DNA of 64,000 bases from Auanema rhodensis (lineage: Eukaryota; Animalia; Nematoda), in contig OZ059897.1 of the NCBI GenBank assembly GCA_964057225.1, positions 15,562,001-15,626,000 of the forward strand, read 5' to 3'. Position numbers and translations under genes: made by a program. The notes below the pieces were generated by a model that saw only the letters and a program-made list of their open reading frames with translations, searched no databases and was not told the origin of the DNA. Below are positions 14,248 to 27,302 of the stretch, one piece after another (position 1 is the stretch's first letter; every line of letters begins with the position of its first letter).

Positions 14248-16679
14248 ATGTTGCGTTCCGTTTTGTCTCGTGCTGGACAGCAGATTCGCTATAGTTCAAC
14301 CCCTGCCGGTATTAGAGATGTTACTCCAAAATATACACAAGTATAAACATTAATCGAAAACTTAATTTAATTTTCGAAATATTAGCTGTTCATCAATAAC
14401 GAATTTGTAAACAGTGTTAGTGGAAAAACTTTCGAGACTTTTAACCCTGCCAATGGAAAACTGATAACTCAGGTGCAGGAGGGTGACAAAGCTGATATTG
14501 ACAAGGCTGTTGCGGTACTTTTCTGAAAATTATAATTTGCAATACTGAGTATAATATCTTAGGCTGCATCACAAGCTTTCCGTCTAGGTTCACCATGGCG
14601 TCGCATGGATGCTGCTCAAAGAGGAGTTCTTTTAAACAGACTTGCCGATCTTATGGAACGTGATCGTGTTATGCTTGCCGTACGTTTAAAAGCGCTGAGA
14701 AAATAAGTATTATTTTATTTCAGTCTCTCGAAACATTGGACAATGGAAAACCTTATGGAGTCTCGTACAATGCTGATCTTGCTCTCTCTATTGCCTGTTT
14801 CCGGTAAATTAATTACTTTCAAAAAAATTGGACAATTATTATATTGGTTAAAATCACTAGAAAATGTATAACATATTTTTTCATTTACGGTGATGAGATT
14901 GAATTATCATCATAACTAGAGATAATGGTTATCACGCCATTTAACCAGCTTTTTTTAATCAAAGCTTTCCTCTATCATGAATTTTGTACCAAATTGTGAT
15001 TTGTTCAGAACCCAGAATGCTTTTCTGAGATAAACGAATTACAGAGCCCTATTAAATATTAAGGGACATATATATTAATTATAATTTTCCAGTTACTATG
15101 CCGGGTGGGCTGACAAGAATCATGGAAAAACAATTCCAATTGCTGGAGATCATTTCACTTACACCCGCCATGAACCAGTTGGAGTTTGTGGACAGATTAT
15201 CCCCGTAAGTTTATTTATTTTTGATTATGAGGATAAATAGTATTGATATATAATGATATTATAACTATTTATAACTGACGTTGTAGTGGAATTTCCCTCT
15301 TTTGATGCAAGCTTGGAAATTGGGTCCAGCACTTGCTATGGGAAACACAGTTGTTATGAAAGTAGCTGAGCAAACCCCCTTATCCGCTCTTCATGTTGCC
15401 AGCCTTATCCGAGAGGTAATATTGTGAAAGTGTACTCAGAAGCTTACTCAAGTTTACTTGTTTACATTTTTAGGAAGTTTATTCCTAATGTTTAATTTTA
15501 GGCTGGTTTCCCTGAAGGAGTTGTAAACATCATTCCAGGATTTGGGCCAACCGCTGGACAAGCTATTTCAAGCCATCCTGGAATTGATAAAGTTGCGTTC
15601 ACTGGATCAACTGAAGTTGGAAGATTGGTTATGAAGGCTGCCGCAGAAAGTAACATCAAAAAGTAAGCTACCGTTTCTTTTTCGAAGTATTGTTTTTTTT
15701 TCAGGGTTACTCTTGAACTTGGAGGAAAGAGTCCAAACATTATCTTTGGTGATGCTGACGGTTGGGTTGTTTGAAATAATAATGAATTTATTTTTTTTTA
15801 CAGTTGCAAAAGCCGCTCAACAAGCTCATCATGGTCTTTTCTTCAATCAGGGACAATGCTGTTGTGCAGGTTCTCGCACTTTTGTTGAAGGAAAGGTGTG
15901 TTTTCTGGCGATTTCGAAATTATATTGTCTTCTCTAAGATTTATGATGAGTTTGTCGCTCACTCTAAAGAATTAGCTGAGAAGAGAGTACTTGGAGATCC
16001 ATTCGATTTGAAAACCGACCAAGGACCACAAGTTGATAAGAATCAAGTAAAAACTATTCTCAGATATGTGGAAGCTGGAAAAAAGGAAGGAGCTCAGTTA
16101 GTTACTGGTGAGAACTGCACTCTAATGTTTTTGTTTTATCAAAACTTTTAGGAGGAGAACAATGGGGCAATGAAGGGCATTATGTTAAGCCTACCATTTT
16201 CGCTAATGTTCATGATCAAATGACAATCGCTCAAGAAGAAGTAATACAGTTCTTAAACAAAAATTTCATCATTCAATATACAGATTTTTGGCCCTGTAAT
16301 GAGCATTATTCGTTTTGACAACACCGATGATTTGATTGAGAAAGCTAATAATACCATTTATGGACTTGCTGCTGCTGTTGTAACTAAGGATATTGACAAA
16401 GCACTTCATGTTGCTAATAATATTCGAGCTGGTTCTGTTTGGTATTTTTAAACTTTTTATTGTTTTATATATTTTATATTCATAGGGTTAACTGTTATGA
16501 CGTTTTTGATGCTGCTGCTCCATTCGGTGGATACAAACAATCTGGTATTTTAAAAAGACGAAAAGTATTCACATTATATTATTTTTCTAGGAATTGGGCG
16601 TGAACTTGGAGAATATGGACTTGAAGCTTATACCGAAGTGAAGTCCGTCACTATCAAGGTTCCACAGAAGAACTCCTAA
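14248..16679 (+). CDS. alh-1: Mitochondrial aldehyde dehydrogenase (ALDH2-like), multi-exon
   Basis: Presequence [17 protein letters not shown]; [25 protein letters not shown], catalytic [20 protein letters not shown]; ends [14 protein letters not shown]. Confidence 0.93.
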
Positions 16680-17079: not shown

Positions 17080-20000
17080 ATGGAGCAAAATGTAGATATT
17101 CGATGGATTATAAAACAATGTGTTCACCCTCCTGAAACAACAAACTTTGATGCTGTACTAATACACCCACTTTTGCCTAAATCTGTTTATTACAATTCCC
17201 CTATTGTTGAAGTAGAAGTAAATTCTAAGACAAGTACTAGTGATGTAGATTTTATTGATCCATTAGGTAACTTTCAGAACTTTATAAATTATCTTCCGGT
17301 TTCTTTAAGGTGTTGCAACCGAGGAAGAAGTTTTGGCTGGCCCTTCATGTACCACTGTTGATGTTGATTTACTCAATACTAACGATTTCTCTAAAAGAAC
17401 TTCGGTTATTCTGCATAACACATTAGAAAGTAAACCGATTGATCGTGTCATTATTGGTAAGTAAATACAAAATAATTGAATCACTTGTTTAGTTCAGATG
17501 TGAATCTGCCAGATTTCGAGTCGTGGAAATCAAAAAGAGTTCAAATTTTGAATACCTACTCAACAAATGAAAAACTTAGTATTAGTTCAAGCTTTCTTGG
17601 TGTTCCTAAAACTAAGTCAGGATTGTCTGACAAAAAGAAAAGAAGGTAGTATACTATTATTACAATAAAACAATAGCAAAATTAAGAATGGAAATGTTGG
17701 AAGATATGTCGGGCTTGAAAAAAATATCTGAGTTATCTCAAGCTGAATTTGTTTCTCATGTAAATGATTTAAGAGAACTTTTAATTTTTGCTTGGGATAA
17801 TAACAAAAGAGTGGAGGCTATCAGAGTTTGTTTTCTGAATTGATTAATTTTAAGTTTATTCTAGCTTATAGATTGTAACCGAACTAGCTAGAATGCTTTC
17901 ATCACAACTTAATGCACAGTTTTATCCAAATCAGTGGATTTTAGTTACTGATATTCTTGATTTATTTGGTAAGCTCGTGTTTAATCGTCTTCTATTAAAA
18001 GCTAATGAAGTATGTTTCCTTTTATTTCATAATTGGCTTTATAATACATCTAGGAATGTCAAGCACAAGGTCTACCAAAACTCTCAGAAACTTTTAATTC
18101 TAACGAAGTTCCTTTGAAAGCTGCCGAAGTGGCTAAAAATTGGTTCTGCAAAATAGCTGATATCAAAGAGTTGATACCCCGCTTTTATGGTAACGGTATT
18201 CAGCCTTGAAAGCATGCAGCTGTTATTTTTTAGTCGAAACGGCCCTCATATCTTGTTTAAATTTTCTGGATTCGTCTAGTTGTCATGTCAATTTACTACG
18301 CCTTTGCGGAATGGCAGGAAGTAAAATAAAGCTTTAATCTTATAACTGAAATCATACATGATTCAGAATTACCTCAACCGCTCTTAGGTGCGTACGCTAG
18401 AGCGTACGTTTGTAAAATAGCGATGCACTTCAATCCTTCGGATCGGGCCATTCATTGGAAAGCTTTAAATGATTCCATGCAGCAGAGTAATATATATTTG
18501 GTAAGTACAAATTTTATTTGCTTTTCAAATGTCATACTTCAGCCTGAATTAACAAGTCCTGCATATGAATGGATTATTCAATGTGTTTCTTATGCTGCAA
18601 CAACTGTGGATGATCTCGGACCATTGTGGGAATATGCCAAAATGGTGATTATTTCTTATTTCAAGCATATGTCAATATCATTTCAGGACGACAAAAGATT
18701 CCTCGTATCTTCTTTTGTAAAATCTGTTTCACCTCGATATCTTGCCAGTCTTTCCATGCCATTTTGTGAATTGGTTAGCCATCTAAAAATTATTCATAAG
18801 GAGCTAAGAGCCTTTTTTTCAGGTTTTGTGCAAGAATCCTACAGTTTTCGATGTTTGTACATTTGGAGAAAGGTTATTACTCGTAGAAACACCTGAAAAG
18901 GATAGATATAATATTCTTCTGTACGCTTGAACACAATTTAGCTTTGTTTACCTTCTCTTGTTTCAGACGCATATCAAAGTTTTTGGCGAAGTTACCAAAT
19001 TTCACAGATTACGTAGTAGGATATGCTACTTGGAGCAAATTTATTGGAAGGTGTAGTTAATAAATTTCATTTCTTTTAATGTTTATTGTAGATATTTTGA
19101 TTTTCCTGATCTTTGTGATGTGGCTTCTGGCCTTTCGAAAAGATTACAGAAAGAATCAAGAGTAAGAATTTTTTAAAATTAAGTATATAGTTTCAAAAAT
19201 ATATGTTTTTAAAGTTTTCGGATGAGTCCTTTGAATTGGTTGTGAAAATTGTGAATAATTTACTCACAGCCAAGAAGTACAATAGTGATCTTCTGAGAAA
19301 TGAATGTTTTCAAACCGTCTTAGAGTATTTGAGGTGACACTTCCATTGTGATTTATTAAATCAAAATACTACATTCAGAGATGAACCTTATGCATCAGCT
19401 TGTGCCAAAACTATTCTTGCAGAATTTATACGAACATATACTTATGGTTCACTAACGGATTATCTAATTGCTGATATTGTTTGTTTTTTCTTCTTATTTA
19501 TGTAAAAAGAGATTTTGCAGATTCTCGAGCAATGCCGTGCATTGTGTGAATGTCTCAATCCAGACAGCGTTTCCGATGAGGTAGGTAATCAAGCTAATAT
19601 GTCGTTCTGATTTTGTATTTTAGATCAGAATAGCTTCTAGACTTATCTGTTGTTCATTAGATAGAATATCATTGAATAATGATCGAGAGAGAGGATTATC
19701 ATTGCTAGTCAAGGCTAGAGGATTATTAAGCGAGTTGCCTGAAGTTACGGAAGTTTGTTTTTTTCAATTACAATTATTACCCAAGGATCTTTAGCATATT
19801 GTTTTCTTAATGATTGAATTTGTTCTACACCACCAAATTCATTCTGAAAATTCAGCCAAAAAAGCTGCTTTTATGAGGCATGTTTAGTAAAATGTACAAA
19901 AATATAATTTTATATCATATTTAGAGCATGTGTTGCTAATTTATATATAACCATCCCATCTATACCTGACAATTCTGTTCGTATTATTGCTCTATTGAGA

Positions 20001-20831
20001 ACAATGTGTATTAGTTTGATGATTAGTTCTATGCCTCAGGTATATCATTATTTTTATTGCAAAAAATTTCAAACATTTAGTGTTTTTCTATTTGCAATTT
20101 CATTTTGAAATCCTTCGAGTCGTCTGAGGTTTCAACTCAATTTGTTTCACAATGCTGCCATTTTCTTTCAATATTAGTATCAGTTGGAGATCCAGCAAAT
20201 ACTTCTTATCTTCATTTTTATGATCGTTTCATAGATGTGATTGAAAAGTTTGGTTACTTTGAATTTACTAAAATTATTAAGCTGTATACAGAAAAAAATG
20301 GAAGGACCCTTTTCTAAAGTTTGAGACTTGGATTGCTTGTCTCGGATACTTAATTAATGTTAGTCTACCTGAAATCCCATCTAAAATTATTGGTGTAGAA
20401 GCTAATGATTCGTTATATGGATCAAGCACTGAATATTTGTGAGTTAACCAATACTTTTAAACAACTTTTTAACATACATTCTTTAGATCTGTTGTTCAAG
20501 ATAGAATAACTAATGCAATGGATGTTATGATTGATATGATAGAGAGTGAAGATCCAAGCAAGCCTTTAATTTCTATCGGTTTAGCAGAGTTCATAGTAGA
20601 AAATTTTGAATTAAGTTCAATGGTAAATATATTCATATTATATACATATTTTTATTCATTTGTTTCTCAAAATGGTTTGTTTAGATTATAAAGATGATAC
20701 TTAACTTAGTGAAACGTGTACTACGTAGCGGAATTTATCAACGTCGTGTTCAAGATATATTAATTACTTTGAAGAATTTAGATTCCGATGATACAACTCT
20801 TGCGAAATTTTTAACTAAATTAGCAATTTAA
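17080..20831 (+). CDS. VPS35L: VPS35 endosomal protein-sorting factor-like (C16orf62; Retriever subunit), ~20 exons
   Basis: DFIDPLG; FESWKSKRVQILNTY; ELSQAEFV...AWDNNKRVEAIRI; FYPNQWILVTDILDLFGKLVFNRL; NWFCKIADIKELIPRFYVE; PLLGAYARAYVC; FMRACVANLYITIPSI; NDSLYG. All match recalled C16orf62 motifs. Stop TAA at 20829-20831. Confidence 0.88.
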
Positions 20832-21007
20832 TTTAATATTTTGATAATTTTATATATCATGTGATCTGTGATAGGGAGTAAATTGTGATTGGTTCTTATG
20901 ATCGAAATAAGTTATATTATTCGTCTGCTGTTGAGATTGAAAATCAGCTACTGATACCTATATTTTCTTTTCTGTAGTTTGTTTTATTTTAACAGCTATT
21001 TCAGAAT

Positions 21008-22324
21008 ATGACTGAAGATTTTGAAATATCGTTTGAAGCCGATGAAGACTTTCGAATGGATTACAAGAATGGTGGGGTTGATGTTTGCTAGATTCGCAAT
21101 TCATAGGAAATTCACTTCAGAGAGTGCCAGTACAGATAACAATGAGCATGGACCGAGCACGTCAACTGATCCTGTAGGGTTTCGAGAAGCAAGTATAAGG
21201 TATCAAGAACTACAAAAAGAAATGGATCGTATTGATGATATAGCTGTTCAGGTTTCATAATTTTCACAATGGAAATGATGTTAAATCTTTTAGCTGAAAT
21301 TCGCTCTTGAATTGAGAGCAAAAATGGAAGAATGTTATAGTTCACGTTCTATGAATAAATGTCCTATCTCTACACGATATGAGGTGATATGGGATGCTCT
21401 AGGTTCTAAAAAAACTTATTTTGGAGTTTAGGTTCGTTGTCTATCGAGTGGATCTTTGCTATATATCATTCATATTCTCAACAATTCTCAACGATCTTTA
21501 AATAATTGGTTCTTTCTAGTTACCGCAGAGTCCATAGGTATATTTTCTTTGTTCTTTGTACTTTATATACATATAAATGTCACCATAGAATCGGCTGGCC
21601 CGGTTCACACAAGTTCGTTCTGTTTACCATTTTTGGAACCAAATCAAAGCAGAACTTTTGAAATATTCTCTGACCGGAAGTCGGTCAGACTACCATGTAT
21701 CATACGAACTAAACTTATTAGGTACCGTTTCTCGCTTTCAATTAACATTTTCTTTTATCATTTTCTAACAGAAGCTTTGAAATTTCATCGCCATCCAAAA
21801 TAATTAGAATATCATTGGATCATGAGCTGGTATCTTATCTCAATTTTATGAAAATTTGTTCCACATCTTCTGAAAAAAAAGCATCACATGGGGTAAGTTG
21901 TAATGACATCTCCAAGAAAATGATTTTTCAGTCATTCACTTTGAATATTCCGTGCTCTTACATCAATTTGTTGTGTGGATGTCAAGAAAACGTCAAGCCA
22001 TTCCATATACTTCAACTATTGTTACACGTCGCTACTCCACAAGCAGAATTAAACTTAGACTGCACTAGCATGAACTGCCAAATTACCTATTTCCAATCTT
22101 TTCATCAAGTTAGATTTGAGGCAGAAAAGATGCATAAAAATATAGATCTAGTGGTATATGTCAGAGATTCTGATATGAGACGAAAGCTACAACGCGATAT
22201 CCAATTATTTCTAATTACTAAATATATTGGTATTCTAAAACGTATGCCTTCTGAAATTGAATGGTCGCGTAATGAACGCAATATTAACGATATTTTCGTT
22301 AATATAGTTGAAAAGTTTACTTAG
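21008..22324 (+). CDS. 345-aa uncharacterised protein; candidate divergent FAAP100-like (coiled coil + beta-sandwich + alpha/beta domain, no propeller)
   Basis: Exons 21008-21071, 21121-21251, 21294-21383, 21432-21537, 21589-21721, 21772-21892 and 21932-22324 join in one frame (1038 nt) across GT-AG introns of 39-51 nt. The gene model is solid; the FAAP100 resemblance is by eye only. Confidence 0.7.
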
Positions 22325-22451
22325 GTTTTTTCCATTTGATCAATGAATATTTTTATCGGTTTAAATTGTTTTTTTTTCTCTTCATATTTTCCATTCGTAT
22401 TTGGCTCGCTCTTGGTTCAGATTAATTCTATTTAACTCGCCCATTTTTAGA

Positions 22452-23782
22452 ATGTCTTCTGGTAAGCGAGCTGTTGTAGTTGGGGCAACTGGCGCAGTCG
22501 GAAAACAGTTGGTACAAGCGCTTATTGCTTCTTCCGAATTCTCAAGAGTTGTTCTTCTCGGCAGAAGAAAGATCGAGGAACTACCAGAAAACAATAAAAT
22601 TGTAAGTTGATTATGGATAGAGGTTTTCCAAGTTCTTTTTATGTGAATTTTATTAGTGTGTAGGATTGTAACCGATATATTGAGATGATATCGCTGCAAT
22701 CTGTATCAGTATTTGCTGTTATTTATTACTTACATAATTCGCAACCGATATCGTTCAGACTAAAGATGTAAATGAAAAAGTTGTGCCCAACAAACAATTT
22801 TCCAATTCACGTGAAAGCATTAGCCATGCTCGGTTTTTGTTTGAAGTTGATGATCTTTCAAGGTTATACTTACTGAACAAACGTGTTTAATCCTTTTTCG
22901 AATGTTGTTTTCTTTTTTTTAATGGAAAGTGATAACAATATCTAGTTTCGGTTGAAATTACCTGGACTAACTAAATACGATTATTTAATTAAATTATTGT
23001 ATAAAAATTCTACTGAAAAAATAACACTAGGAAACAATTTTAATTTATATTTAGGAACAACATATCATCGATTTTGATAATCTGGAGAAAGATTCAGCAA
23101 AATTCAAAGACATAGATGTCGGATTTTGCGCTTTGGGAACAACCCGTTCAAAATCTGGAGCAGTATAATATAGCAATTTTTCTGAAGAATTACATCTGTA
23201 TTTAGGCTGGTTTTTACAAAGTTGATCATGATTATGTTTTAAACACAGCAACTGTTGCAAAGAATGAAGGTATGAAAAACTAAATAAGAAAACTCTGCTT
23301 CTTTAGGTGTTCAGGAATTTGTTTTGGTATCATCGACGGGAGCAAATGAAAATTCGTTATTCCTTTATCCTAAAACTAAAGTATGTGCATATCTTATATA
23401 ATAAAAAACAATTTTTTTAGGGACAAGTCGAACGAGACATTGCTGCTCTTGAATTCAAGAAGTTTTTGATTGTTCAACCTGGATTCTTAGAAGCTGAGCG
23501 TTCAGGTTCATATAAATTATGTTGCTAAACAATATCTGAAGAATTGAAGAATCGCGTATTCTGGAGTCAGTTGCCAGATTTTTCATTACTCCTTTGAAGC
23601 TTGTCTCAGACAGCATTGCTATATCTGTCGAAAACTGCGCTAAGGTACTTTATCACTGATAATGATATAAGCTCTAAGTTTTAAAGGCTATGATTGTGGG
23701 ATCTTTGGATAATACTATCAAAGGGAAAGTAATATGGGGCAACTCTGAACTTCTCAAAAAGGCTAAAGAATACAAATCGTAA
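22452..23782 (+). CDS. HTATIP2: HTATIP2/TIP30 (CC3) NAD(P)-binding short-chain oxidoreductase-like protein
   Basis: Rossmann motif [72 protein letters not shown]. Stop TAA at 23780-23782. Confidence 0.9.
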
Positions 23783-24487: not shown

Positions 24488-27302
24488 ATGACTTCTCATC
24501 CTGGTATGCCGCGGAATTTATCTTCCACCAAAGTGGCACTCACTTTGGCTGGAGAAGATTTGGATGAAAGCCAGGTACTAAATTTATAAATAAGTAACTT
24601 CATTTTGTGTATTTGAGATTTTACCTATGGACAGCGGTAAATCTGCTAGAGAAGAAGGTCGATTTGTTTTTGAAACTGCTTGGGAAGTTGCAAATAAGGT
24701 TATCATGCTCAGTTTTACAACTATTTCAATCTAGTACTTCAGGTTGGTGGAATTTACACTGTTCTTAGGTCAAAGGCGCAAGTTAGTACAGAAGAATTAG
24801 GTAATATTAGAAAACTATTACATAGCTGAGTTGTGATGTATAGGTGATCAGTATTGCATGTTTGGGCCTATGAAGGACGATAGATGGAGATTAGAAGTCG
24901 AACAAATCGAACCAGAGAATAGGTATTTATGAAAACAAAAATAAAAATCATTTTGTTCTTAGAACTATTCGTCAAGCTATGAAGCTTTTCCATCGTGATG
25001 GGTTCCGCGTAAGTTTCAATGTAATAAAAGACGATGAGCGAAATGCTGGTTTAGTGCACTTACGGACGGTGGCTTATTGAGGGATATCCTAAAGTCATTC
25101 TTTTTGATTTGGGTTCCGGAGCTATAAGAATGGACCAATGGAAACAAGAGCTCTTTGATAGGTACAACTACAACTGCTTTTTTCGTTTTTTATAATACAA
25201 TACATATCAGATGCAAGGTAGGAATCCCGTGGGAGGATATGGAATCTAATGATGCTGTTATCCTTGGATTCATGATTGCTATTTTTCTCCGTCACTTTCG
25301 TGAATCGGTTACCGCTTATCAACCGTTGGTTGTTGCACATTTCCACGAATGGCAAGCTGGTTTGTGAATATCGAAAATGCGTGTTTTAGCTTTTTGAGTT
25401 ACAGGTGTCGGATTGTTAATGACTCGGCTATGGAAATTAGACATTGCCACTGTTTATACTACTCACGCTACCTTGTTAGGGCGTCATTTATGCGCAGGAG
25501 GATGTGATCTCTATAATAATCTTGGAAAATTCGATTTAGACACTGAAGCTGGAAAAAGAAAGGTACTCTTGTTTGAGAAGAAACATTTTTATGCAAGTTT
25601 TTCAGATTTATCATCAATATTGCTTAGAGAGAGCGGCATGTCACTCTGCTCATATCTTCACTACGGTTTCAGAAATTACTGGAGTTGAAGCCGAGCATTT
25701 ATTGTTGAGAAAACCTGACATTCTTACTCCTAATGGTTTGAATGTTGTAAAATTTGCAGCTATTCACGAATTCCAAGTAAATTTTATAAGTATTATTTTA
25801 ATAAAGTTATTTTTAAGAACTTGCACTCCATGGCCAAAGAAAAAATTCATACTTTCATCCGAGGACATTTCCATGGACATTTAGACTTTGATTTGGACAA
25901 AACCTTGTACTTCTTCACTGCCGGACGGTAAACGTCTTATAATTTTTATAATTTAATTTTTTTTCGTATAGATACGAGTTTTCTAACAAGGGAGGTGATT
26001 TGTTCATTGAATCACTTGCACGACTTAATCATTATTTGAAAACTACTGATGATCCAAGACATGCTGGAACAACTGTTGTTGCTTTTATCATTTATCCAGG
26101 TTTCCATTTCAAGTTTGAGTATATTTCAATATGTGTTGTTTTAGCTCCATCGAACTCTTTTAACGTTGAATCTCTTCGTGGGCAAGCCGTTACCAAACAA
26201 TTAAAAGAAGCTGCAGACAGAATTAAGGTGAATAAGTTCTCAAATTCACCATACTCTATATTCATTTCAGGAAAATGTTGGACAAAGAATTTTTGATGCT
26301 TGCTTGCAAGGAAGACTCCCAGATGGCCAAGATCTTTTAAGTCCTCCTGAAAAGATTATGGTTAGTATGAACTAAAGGTCACATGCATATTTTTTTGATT
26401 TCAGTTAAAGAGATGCATAATGGCTAGTGAAAAGCATGAATTACCTCCTATATGTACACATAATATGTTAAACGGAAATGATCAAGTTATCTTTTCAATA
26501 CATCATAGTTATTATGTTTTACATGTCAGGTCCTGGGCGCTCTTCGTAGATGCCAATTGCTGAATGACAAGTTCGATAGAGTGAAAGTAGTCTTTCATCC
26601 TGAGTTCTTGTCCTCAGTATCTCCTTTGATTGGCCTTGATTATGAAGACTTTGTTCGTGGATGTCATTTGGGAATTTTCCCATCTTATTATGAACCATGG
26701 GGGTATCTTTAATTTAATTATGATCTAGTTAATTGGTTTTCATTCAGCTATACACCCGCTGAGTGTACTGTCATGGGTATTCCATCAGTTTCAACTAATC
26801 TTTCCGGATTTGGATGCTTTATGGAAGTATAATCATACATATTAAAATCTTATTTAAATGTTAATGTTCAGGAACATGTCAAACACTGTGAGGAATATGG
26901 TATATACGTCGTTAACCGCCGGTTTCAAGGAGTAGAAGACTCCGTTAGACAACTCACTCAGATTATGTTAGTTTTTTTATTGTGTTTTTATTATTTAAAC
27001 TAATGTTCTTATAATTATAGGTATGATTTCTGTGGTTTATCACGAAGACAGCGTATTCTTTTACGTAATGGAACCGAAAGCTTGAGTGCACTTTTGGATT
27101 GGAACAGCTTGGGCAGTTTTTATAGGTTTGAAATGGTTTTGGCTATTTTAATCTATTTTTTTTGAGATCTTGCCGAAGAATGGCTTTAGAAAAATTACAT
27201 CCTGATCTTGATAAGATCATTCATGAGAACGAAGGCAAAGTACCATCTGCAGCTACTAGTCGTCGACCCAGTTTTCACAGTAGCGACGAGGAAGACGAAT
27301 AA
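24488..27302 (+). CDS. gsy-1: Glycogen synthase (an in-frame upstream ATG also exists at 24473)
   Basis: MPRNLSS; [22 protein letters not shown]; GRWLIEGYP; AHFHEWQAG; [14 protein letters not shown]; [24 protein letters not shown]; [21 protein letters not shown]. Stop TAA at 27300-27302. Confidence 0.96.

Follow-up and report, generated by a model that had tools for sequence, protein, structure and literature searches.

The question raised by this locus is whether rhabditid nematodes encode a counterpart of FAAP100, a subunit of the Fanconi anemia (FA) core complex. C. elegans has FCD-2, FNCI-1, FNCM-1 and DOG-1, and its FCD-2 is reportedly monoubiquitinated, with the FCD-2 E3 ligase and the core-complex subunits except FANCM described as unidentified (PMC3610817). 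A 2024 survey entered no FANCL, FANCB or FAAP100 for nematodes (PMC11061109), and a 2025 study described FAAP100 as an 'orphan' with recognisable homologs in vertebrates only (PMC12126235); our own literature searches turned up no report of either FANCL or FAAP100 in a nematode. Automatic labels naming FAAP100 do, however, already exist for some nematode proteins, in the ESM Atlas cluster 'FP100 protein (Fragment)'. Within the window (the whole 64,000-nucleotide stretch of Auanema rhodensis DNA that was analysed), the first-pass annotation had proposed that the gene at 21008-22324 encodes a truncated FAAP100. On the basis of the predicted fold, the gene is probably a diverged, propeller-less FAAP100 homolog that would act as a dimerising scaffold in a reduced FA-type complex.

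An expressed, trans-spliced gene of seven exons

Rebuilt from the window, the FAAP100-like gene comprises seven exons at 21008-22324 on the forward (+) strand, with a CDS of 1038 nt encoding 345 aa plus a TAG stop, and its six introns are all GT..AG and 39-51 nt each. Transcript evidence was drawn from contigs of four public runs belonging to one study, which were compared with positions 20900-22450; about half of the words sampled from the stretch were present in these runs. All six exon joints were exact in the transcript contigs, at 100% identity, and a single 1015-nt contig (contig 10 of run X4) covers 7/7 exons. The seven-exon, 345-aa open reading frame read from the letters alone at first pass is consequently backed by RNA contigs that agree with the predicted frame, and the peptide strings that had been cited from it are all present in the spliced translation.

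The 5' end of the X4 contig has no genomic match and consists of AGGGTTTAATTACCCAAG and the next letters, which together are the nematode SL1 leader. The contig matches the genome from 20999 with one differing letter (SL1 ...TTTGAG vs genomic TTTCAG, the trans-splice acceptor at 20999-21004 on the + strand). Splicing of SL1 behind the AG at 21003-21004 puts the leader 3 nt ahead of the ATG, with 21005 (AAT ATG) as the first position of the mRNA body. Therefore, 21008 is the true start of the gene, the 5' end is complete, and the mRNA includes no upstream propeller-coding exon. On the 3' side the transcript contigs reach at most to 22353 (run X1, record 3), near which the mRNA ends, so that the 3' UTR is short (22325-22353, +). 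Overall, the contigs confirm the expression of the gene, its SL1 trans-splicing and its predicted exon structure. A minor, frameshifting alternative donor was also seen in one contig of one run only (joint 21197>21292); this alternative 5' splice site precedes the main donor of exon 2 by 52 nt, uses the exon 3 acceptor and skips 94 nt.

The exons are all on the + strand. Exon 1 (21008-21071) carries the start codon and the first part of an acidic N-terminal tail, and exon 2 (21121-21251; contig joint 21070>21120) carries the remainder of the tail and the first half of a long helix. The acidic character noticed at first pass is borne out by the first 40 aa, which include 12 D/E and 2 K/R. The long helix, transferred from the model of the Nippostrongylus ortholog described below, spans window aa 34-82 (21156-21344, +), and its second half (LKFALELRAKMEECYSSR) is encoded in exon 3 (21294-21383) together with the start of a beta-sandwich. 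The sandwich, also placed from the ortholog model, spans aa 90-203 (21366-21856, +): its strands are encoded by exon 4 (21432-21537), which includes the family motif NNS...L..W with W121 at 21507-21509, by exon 5 (21589-21721), which includes FCLPFLEPNQSRTFEI and RLPCIIRTKL, and by exon 6 (21772-21892), which supplies the last strands and a low-confidence linker at aa 204-214. Exon 7 (21932-22324) encodes an alpha/beta domain and the terminal helices (aa 216-345), with an invariant LLxGC motif, and ends with the TAG at 22322-22324.

A nematode family and its sequence relatives

An exhaustive HMMER search with the query 21773-22321 returned five proteins at E-values of 7e-7 to 4e-5, originating from Nippostrongylus brasiliensis (P0001, 344 aa), a Logan assembly (P0002), MetaClust (P0003), Caenorhabditis auriculariae (P0004) and an ENA contig (P0005). 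P0009, a member of the P0002 cluster, is also 344 aa long, and further relatives were found in Haemonchus, Strongylus, Ancylostoma, Cooperia and others. The spliced window protein aligns from end to end with P0001, P0012 and P0009 at 29-33% identity and with the C. auriculariae ortholog at 28% (21-28% over the comparisons made), so that orthologs from Nippostrongylus, Haemonchus and C. auriculariae fall within 28-33% in full-length alignment; the orthologs are 344-345 aa long and have the same start as the window protein. The FAAP100-like protein is a member of a fast-evolving nematode family that is conserved across rhabditid nematodes. The two Nippostrongylus copies, P0001 and P0007, are about 82% identical by pairwise BLASTP, and the helix region is absent from P0007. 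The UniRef names of these two copies ('Mab-21 domain-containing protein' and 'Proteasome assembly chaperone 1') were rejected, being without Pfam support.

Gene order around the locus is also conserved. Between 19920 and 26363, four genes are collinear with C. auriculariae in order and strand: a VPS35L-like gene (19920-20257), the FAAP100-like gene, an HTATIP2-like gene (22443-23773) and glycogen synthase (24615-26363). As to context, the next gene encodes an HTATIP2-like NAD(P)-binding protein on the + strand, and its acceptor AG (22449-22450) lies 1 nt before its ATG (22452) and about 96 nt past the end of the FAAP100-like mRNA, an operon-like spacing of the kind usual in nematodes. In C. 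auriculariae, the model P0004 (CAD6191743.1, 561 aa, with the UniRef name 'Protein HTATIP2') fuses the FAAP100-like gene to the downstream HTATIP2-like gene, and this fused model is probably a merged operon pair. Two ordinary housekeeping genes were recognised among the neighbours from single exons, namely an aldehyde dehydrogenase upstream (15804-16148; PF00171, 5e-14) and the glycogen synthase downstream (25413-25685; PF05693, 5e-22).

Searches and folding used the window exons, the full-length ortholog P0001 and local scripts, inside which the spliced 345-aa protein was aligned. At the level of sequence profiles, the searches returned no link to FAAP100. Pfam gave no match to single window exons, PF15146 (FANCAA) included, at E<=10, and nine orthologs (P0001-P0005, P0009, P0012, P0013 and P0015) gave no domain and no PF15146 at the same threshold, nor any BBS, Adaptin_N or ear match. 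HMM profiles of the whole family, the sandwich and the C-terminal domain were run against 177,635 PDB sequences and returned no FA protein at E<=10, only chance matches (L38, pyruvate formate-lyase, sulfite reductase). The sequence-profile part of the check proposed at first pass, carried out here against the Pfam FANCAA family and the PDB sequences, accordingly yielded no significant match to FAAP100. A word-index protein search with the stop-free stretch 21746-22321 returned none within a length window of 106-336 aa, which excludes proteins of about 345 aa; the same type of search with P0001 and the family profile returned strongylid relatives only, and exon 7 on its own, used as a query for ESM Atlas features, produced no usable match.

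Protein-language-model features of P0001 and P0012 gave hints in the direction of the FA proteins. After their own nematode cluster, the two proteins lay nearest to an arthropod cluster with PF28312 FANCB_middle (0.91-0.92), followed by the cluster 'FP100 protein (Fragment)' (0.90-0.91), in which 30% of members carry PF15146 and Nematoda is the commonest phylum, and by chordate FAAP100 (0.86); by the rule of thumb of the tool this evidence is rated weak, with three to four of ten named matches sharing a family. Closest in feature space were hypothetical proteins that are short (250-370 aa) and come from arthropods (18% with FANCB_middle), Mucoromycota and Zoopagomycota. Propeller-less FAAP100/FANCB-like proteins may be widespread outside vertebrates.

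A further hint came from a human motif, TCVLENSSSFSLDQGWTLCI, which had been cited at first pass and has an exact match in PDB chain 7kzp_P; the name of this chain is 'Fanconi anemia core complex-associated protein 100'. On the family profile, this 20-mer falls at positions 98-112 (NNT...L..WT), the place expected from the structure, with 1.6 bits, above the 99th percentile of 2000 shuffles in what is a post hoc and weak test. In this alignment the motif NNS...L..W of the window family is positionally equivalent to human FAAP100 N531...W541-T542, where the W541-T542 numbering assumes that the 906-aa construct has its 25 extra residues at the N-terminus; W112 of P0001 begins the strand 112-120, as human W541 begins the strand 541-549. 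The adjacent human position is of clinical relevance, T542P being an FA-causing FAAP100 variant by which binding to FANCB and FANCL is abolished (PMC12126235).

Predicted fold and competing identities

Whole-protein structure was predicted with AlphaFold2 for the Nippostrongylus ortholog P0001, which is 32% identical to the window protein, with the window exons included in the alignment. In the model (pLDDT 81.8, pTM 0.71), a helix (29-74) is followed by a beta-sandwich (81-197), a linker and, at 215-343, an alpha/beta domain with helices. In a Foldseek search of the PDB with this model, the two human FAAP100 chains were the best matches (7kzp_P, 2.1e-12; 7kzp_Q, 5.0e-12), followed by the AP2 alpha ear (1e-7), the gamma-COP ear (1e-6) and 9a0j_P (chicken FAAP100, 4e-6), with weaker matches to 9a0j_B (6e-4, TM 0.21), which is probably chicken FANCB, and to BBS7 (7.6e-4).

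The other comparison methods also put FAAP100 first. VIA-align placed model residues 23-344 on residues 449-823 of 7kzp_Q with a Z-score of 16.6 (295 residues, rmsd 6.0) and 9a0j_P at Z 12.3, the next entry reaching Z 9.6 on a single sandwich. An exhaustive VIA scan of 48,161 representative chains gave Z 16.5 for 7kzp_P and 9.3 for the next chain; BBS7 reached 7.0 and the gamma-COP ear 6.9. Across the VIA-align comparisons, 287-295 residues of human FAAP100 were aligned, over chain ranges of 449-823 and 395-881. In the ESM Atlas shape search the three nearest clusters were all FAAP100/PF15146 (TM by query 0.59-0.63), with coatomer gamma next at 0.45, and the Atlas's own ESMFold model of P0001, which is independent of the AlphaFold2 alignment, matched FAAP100 with a TM of 0.75 over 329 residues. 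Structure-based identity between the nematode protein and FAAP100 is 13-15%.

Combined, these comparisons put FAAP100 first in the PDB by a wide margin (Foldseek 2e-12 vs 1e-7; Z 16.5-16.6 vs 9.3-9.6) and make it the best structural match overall (Atlas TM 0.59-0.75 vs at most 0.48 for other folds); as modelled, the fold and domain order of P0001 are closer to FAAP100 than to anything else solved. In the structural comparison called for at first pass, FAAP100 came out ahead of both the BBSome and the adaptin ear. The description of the protein as a FAAP100 without a propeller also agrees with the match itself, which runs from about residue 449 to the C-terminus of FAAP100, the region that follows the propeller. 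The identity as a truncated FAAP100 therefore stands at the level of the fold (Foldseek, VIA-align, ESM Atlas) and does not extend to sequence profiles, where Pfam and the HMM searches gave none.

The C-terminal domain was also modelled from the window's own exon 7 sequence (pLDDT 85.4). In an exhaustive VIA scan its best match was FAAP100 705-881 (Z 9.7, 113 of 130 residues), tied with the METTL16 VCR (Z 9.1, 99 aligned), and FAAP100 705-881 is the correct C-terminal position for this domain. With the isolated domain, Foldseek against the PDB returned no significant match, only KA1-like folds, and the Atlas shape search returned bacterial SRPBCC-like clusters only.

Beta-sandwich and platform pairs are also found in the adaptin and COPI ears and in BBS2/7/9, and the likeness of the nematode protein to FAAP100 may reflect convergence or very old common ancestry. 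The protein could be an appendage-type (beta-sandwich plus platform) adaptor that is functionally unrelated to the Fanconi proteins, perhaps a trafficking accessory, with its FAAP100 likeness due to a shared ancient fold. The significant ear matches (AP2 alpha, gamma-COP and AP3; E 1e-7 to 1e-6, TM 0.42-0.48), the absence of any sequence-level link to FAAP100 in Pfam or in the HMM search of the PDB, and the conserved adjacency of the VPS35L (retriever) gene immediately upstream would all fit such an adaptor. The ear matches, however, extend over about 200 residues at Z 6.9-7.5, which is in the background range, whereas FAAP100 aligns over 287-329 residues, including the long helix and the C-terminal helices that ears do not have. 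As to the VPS35L neighbour, genes that adjoin one another in a nematode operon or synteny block often have unrelated functions. An appendage-type adaptor is for these reasons a rather unlikely identity, although the strongest of those set against FAAP100.

Another reading is that the protein is the counterpart of FANCB, or a single protein descended from or replacing both subunits, with a homodimer in place of the FANCB-FAAP100 pair. This would be consistent with the match to 9a0j_B, presumably chicken FANCB (Foldseek 6e-4), and with the nearest named feature-space cluster, whose arthropod proteins are about 367 aa long and carry PF28312 FANCB_middle in 18% of members (0.91-0.92). The same Pfam family, however, occurs in 13-14% of the members of FAAP100 clusters and is thus not discriminating. 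FANCB and FAAP100 also have their domain order in common (PMC7467173), so that order fits either subunit. Structurally, the FAAP100 chains were at least eight orders of magnitude better than 9a0j_B in Foldseek, no 7kzp chain except the FAAP100 chains (and hence no human FANCB chain) stood among the best 50 matches listed, and the leading Atlas clusters were all FAAP100. A FANCB-type identity is, on this evidence, improbable.

A BBSome-related protein of the BBS2/7/9 type, which shares the order of coiled coil, GAE and platform and was matched by BBS7, BBS9 and BBS2 (6vbu; Foldseek E 7.6e-4 to 4e-3, Z 7.0), is very improbable, as its scores are far below those of FAAP100 and within the background Z and there is no Pfam BBS match. 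Both FANCB and BBS2/7/9 had been offered at first pass as alternative identities, and both fell behind FAAP100 in Foldseek (6e-4 and 7.6e-4 vs 2e-12).

Proposed role and comparison with known systems

In the solved FA core complexes, the corresponding half of FAAP100 and its counterpart in FANCB are held together by a coiled coil between the two chains and by contacts from sheet to sheet, and the pair serves as the central scaffold for the FANCB-FANCL-FAAP100 ligase module. In the published models of both FANCB and FAAP100, a beta-propeller is followed by the coiled coil, the beta-sandwich, the alpha/beta domain and the C-terminal helices; the last three of these elements, from two copies of each protein, make up the middle lobe, from which coiled coils formed between FANCB and FAAP100 run outward to the lobes with the propellers and FANCL (PMC7467173). 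The PF15146/FANCAA region of human FAAP100 extends from about residue 448 onward (PMC12126235).

According to the model, the nematode protein would be a stand-alone 'FANCAA' region, in which a long coiled-coil helix leads into a beta-sandwich, followed by an alpha/beta domain and C-terminal helices. The exposed helix of 46 residues and the edge strand of the sandwich would imply a partner, which may be a second copy of the protein or a hidden FANCB-like protein. Most likely, the protein would function as a dimerising scaffold, either as a homodimer or together with an unrecognised FANCB-like protein, and the predicted role of this scaffold is in a reduced FA-type complex supporting FCD-2/FNCI-1 monoubiquitination. 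We infer common descent with FAAP100, partner binding via the helix and the sandwich edge strand, and a possible role in crosslink repair. A counterpoint is that propellers are absent from the nematode protein, yet FANCL in the solved complexes sits in the propeller lobes (PMC7467173).

More tentatively, and with clearly less expectation than for the FAAP100 identity itself, it is conceivable that rhabditid nematodes, including Caenorhabditis, keep a minimal, sequence-invisible Fanconi core module, in which a FANCL-like RWD protein would be combined with a FAAP100-like scaffold that has no propeller and is either homodimeric or joined to a hidden FANCB-like partner. If true, the long-sought basis of FCD-2 monoubiquitination in worms would be this module. 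Because the nematode protein is conserved, expressed and folded, as predicted, like the scaffold half of FAAP100, its gene is a concrete one for knockout and a candidate subunit. The protein also points to the coiled coil, sandwich and alpha/beta domain, not the propeller, as the ancient core of FAAP100, and it suggests that the BL100 module is older than vertebrates. What is new here is that a FAAP100-like protein is both propeller-less and invisible to sequence searches.

Among the known systems, the KA1-like domains (METTL16 VCR, MARK3/Chk1 KA1) have an alpha/beta core like that of the isolated C-terminal domain (Z 9.1, 6m1u), but this match is confined to residues 1-101 of the 130-residue domain, and KA1 domains offer no counterpart to the other parts of the nematode protein. 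The ears of AP2 alpha, gamma-COP and AP3 beta have a beta-sandwich followed by an alpha/beta platform, as in the nematode protein; they lack the preceding long helix and the terminal helices (Z about 7, TM 0.42-0.48) and end large HEAT-repeat subunits, whereas the nematode protein is a stand-alone chain of 345 aa, unlike an ear at the C-terminus of a HEAT-repeat adaptor. FANCB has the same domain order as the nematode protein and pairs with FAAP100 via the coiled coil and sandwich (PMC7467173, PMC12126235), and its structural match to the P0001 model was much the weaker one. In comparison with FAAP100 (human 7kzp P/Q, chicken 9a0j P; PF15146), the nematode protein has 345 aa vs 881 aa, with 13-15% identity, which is below Pfam/HMMER detection, and it lacks the N-terminal WD40 beta-propeller (about 440 residues missing), with a 40-residue acidic tail instead. 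From about residue 449 to 881 of FAAP100, the domain order is common to both proteins, with 287-329 residues aligned.
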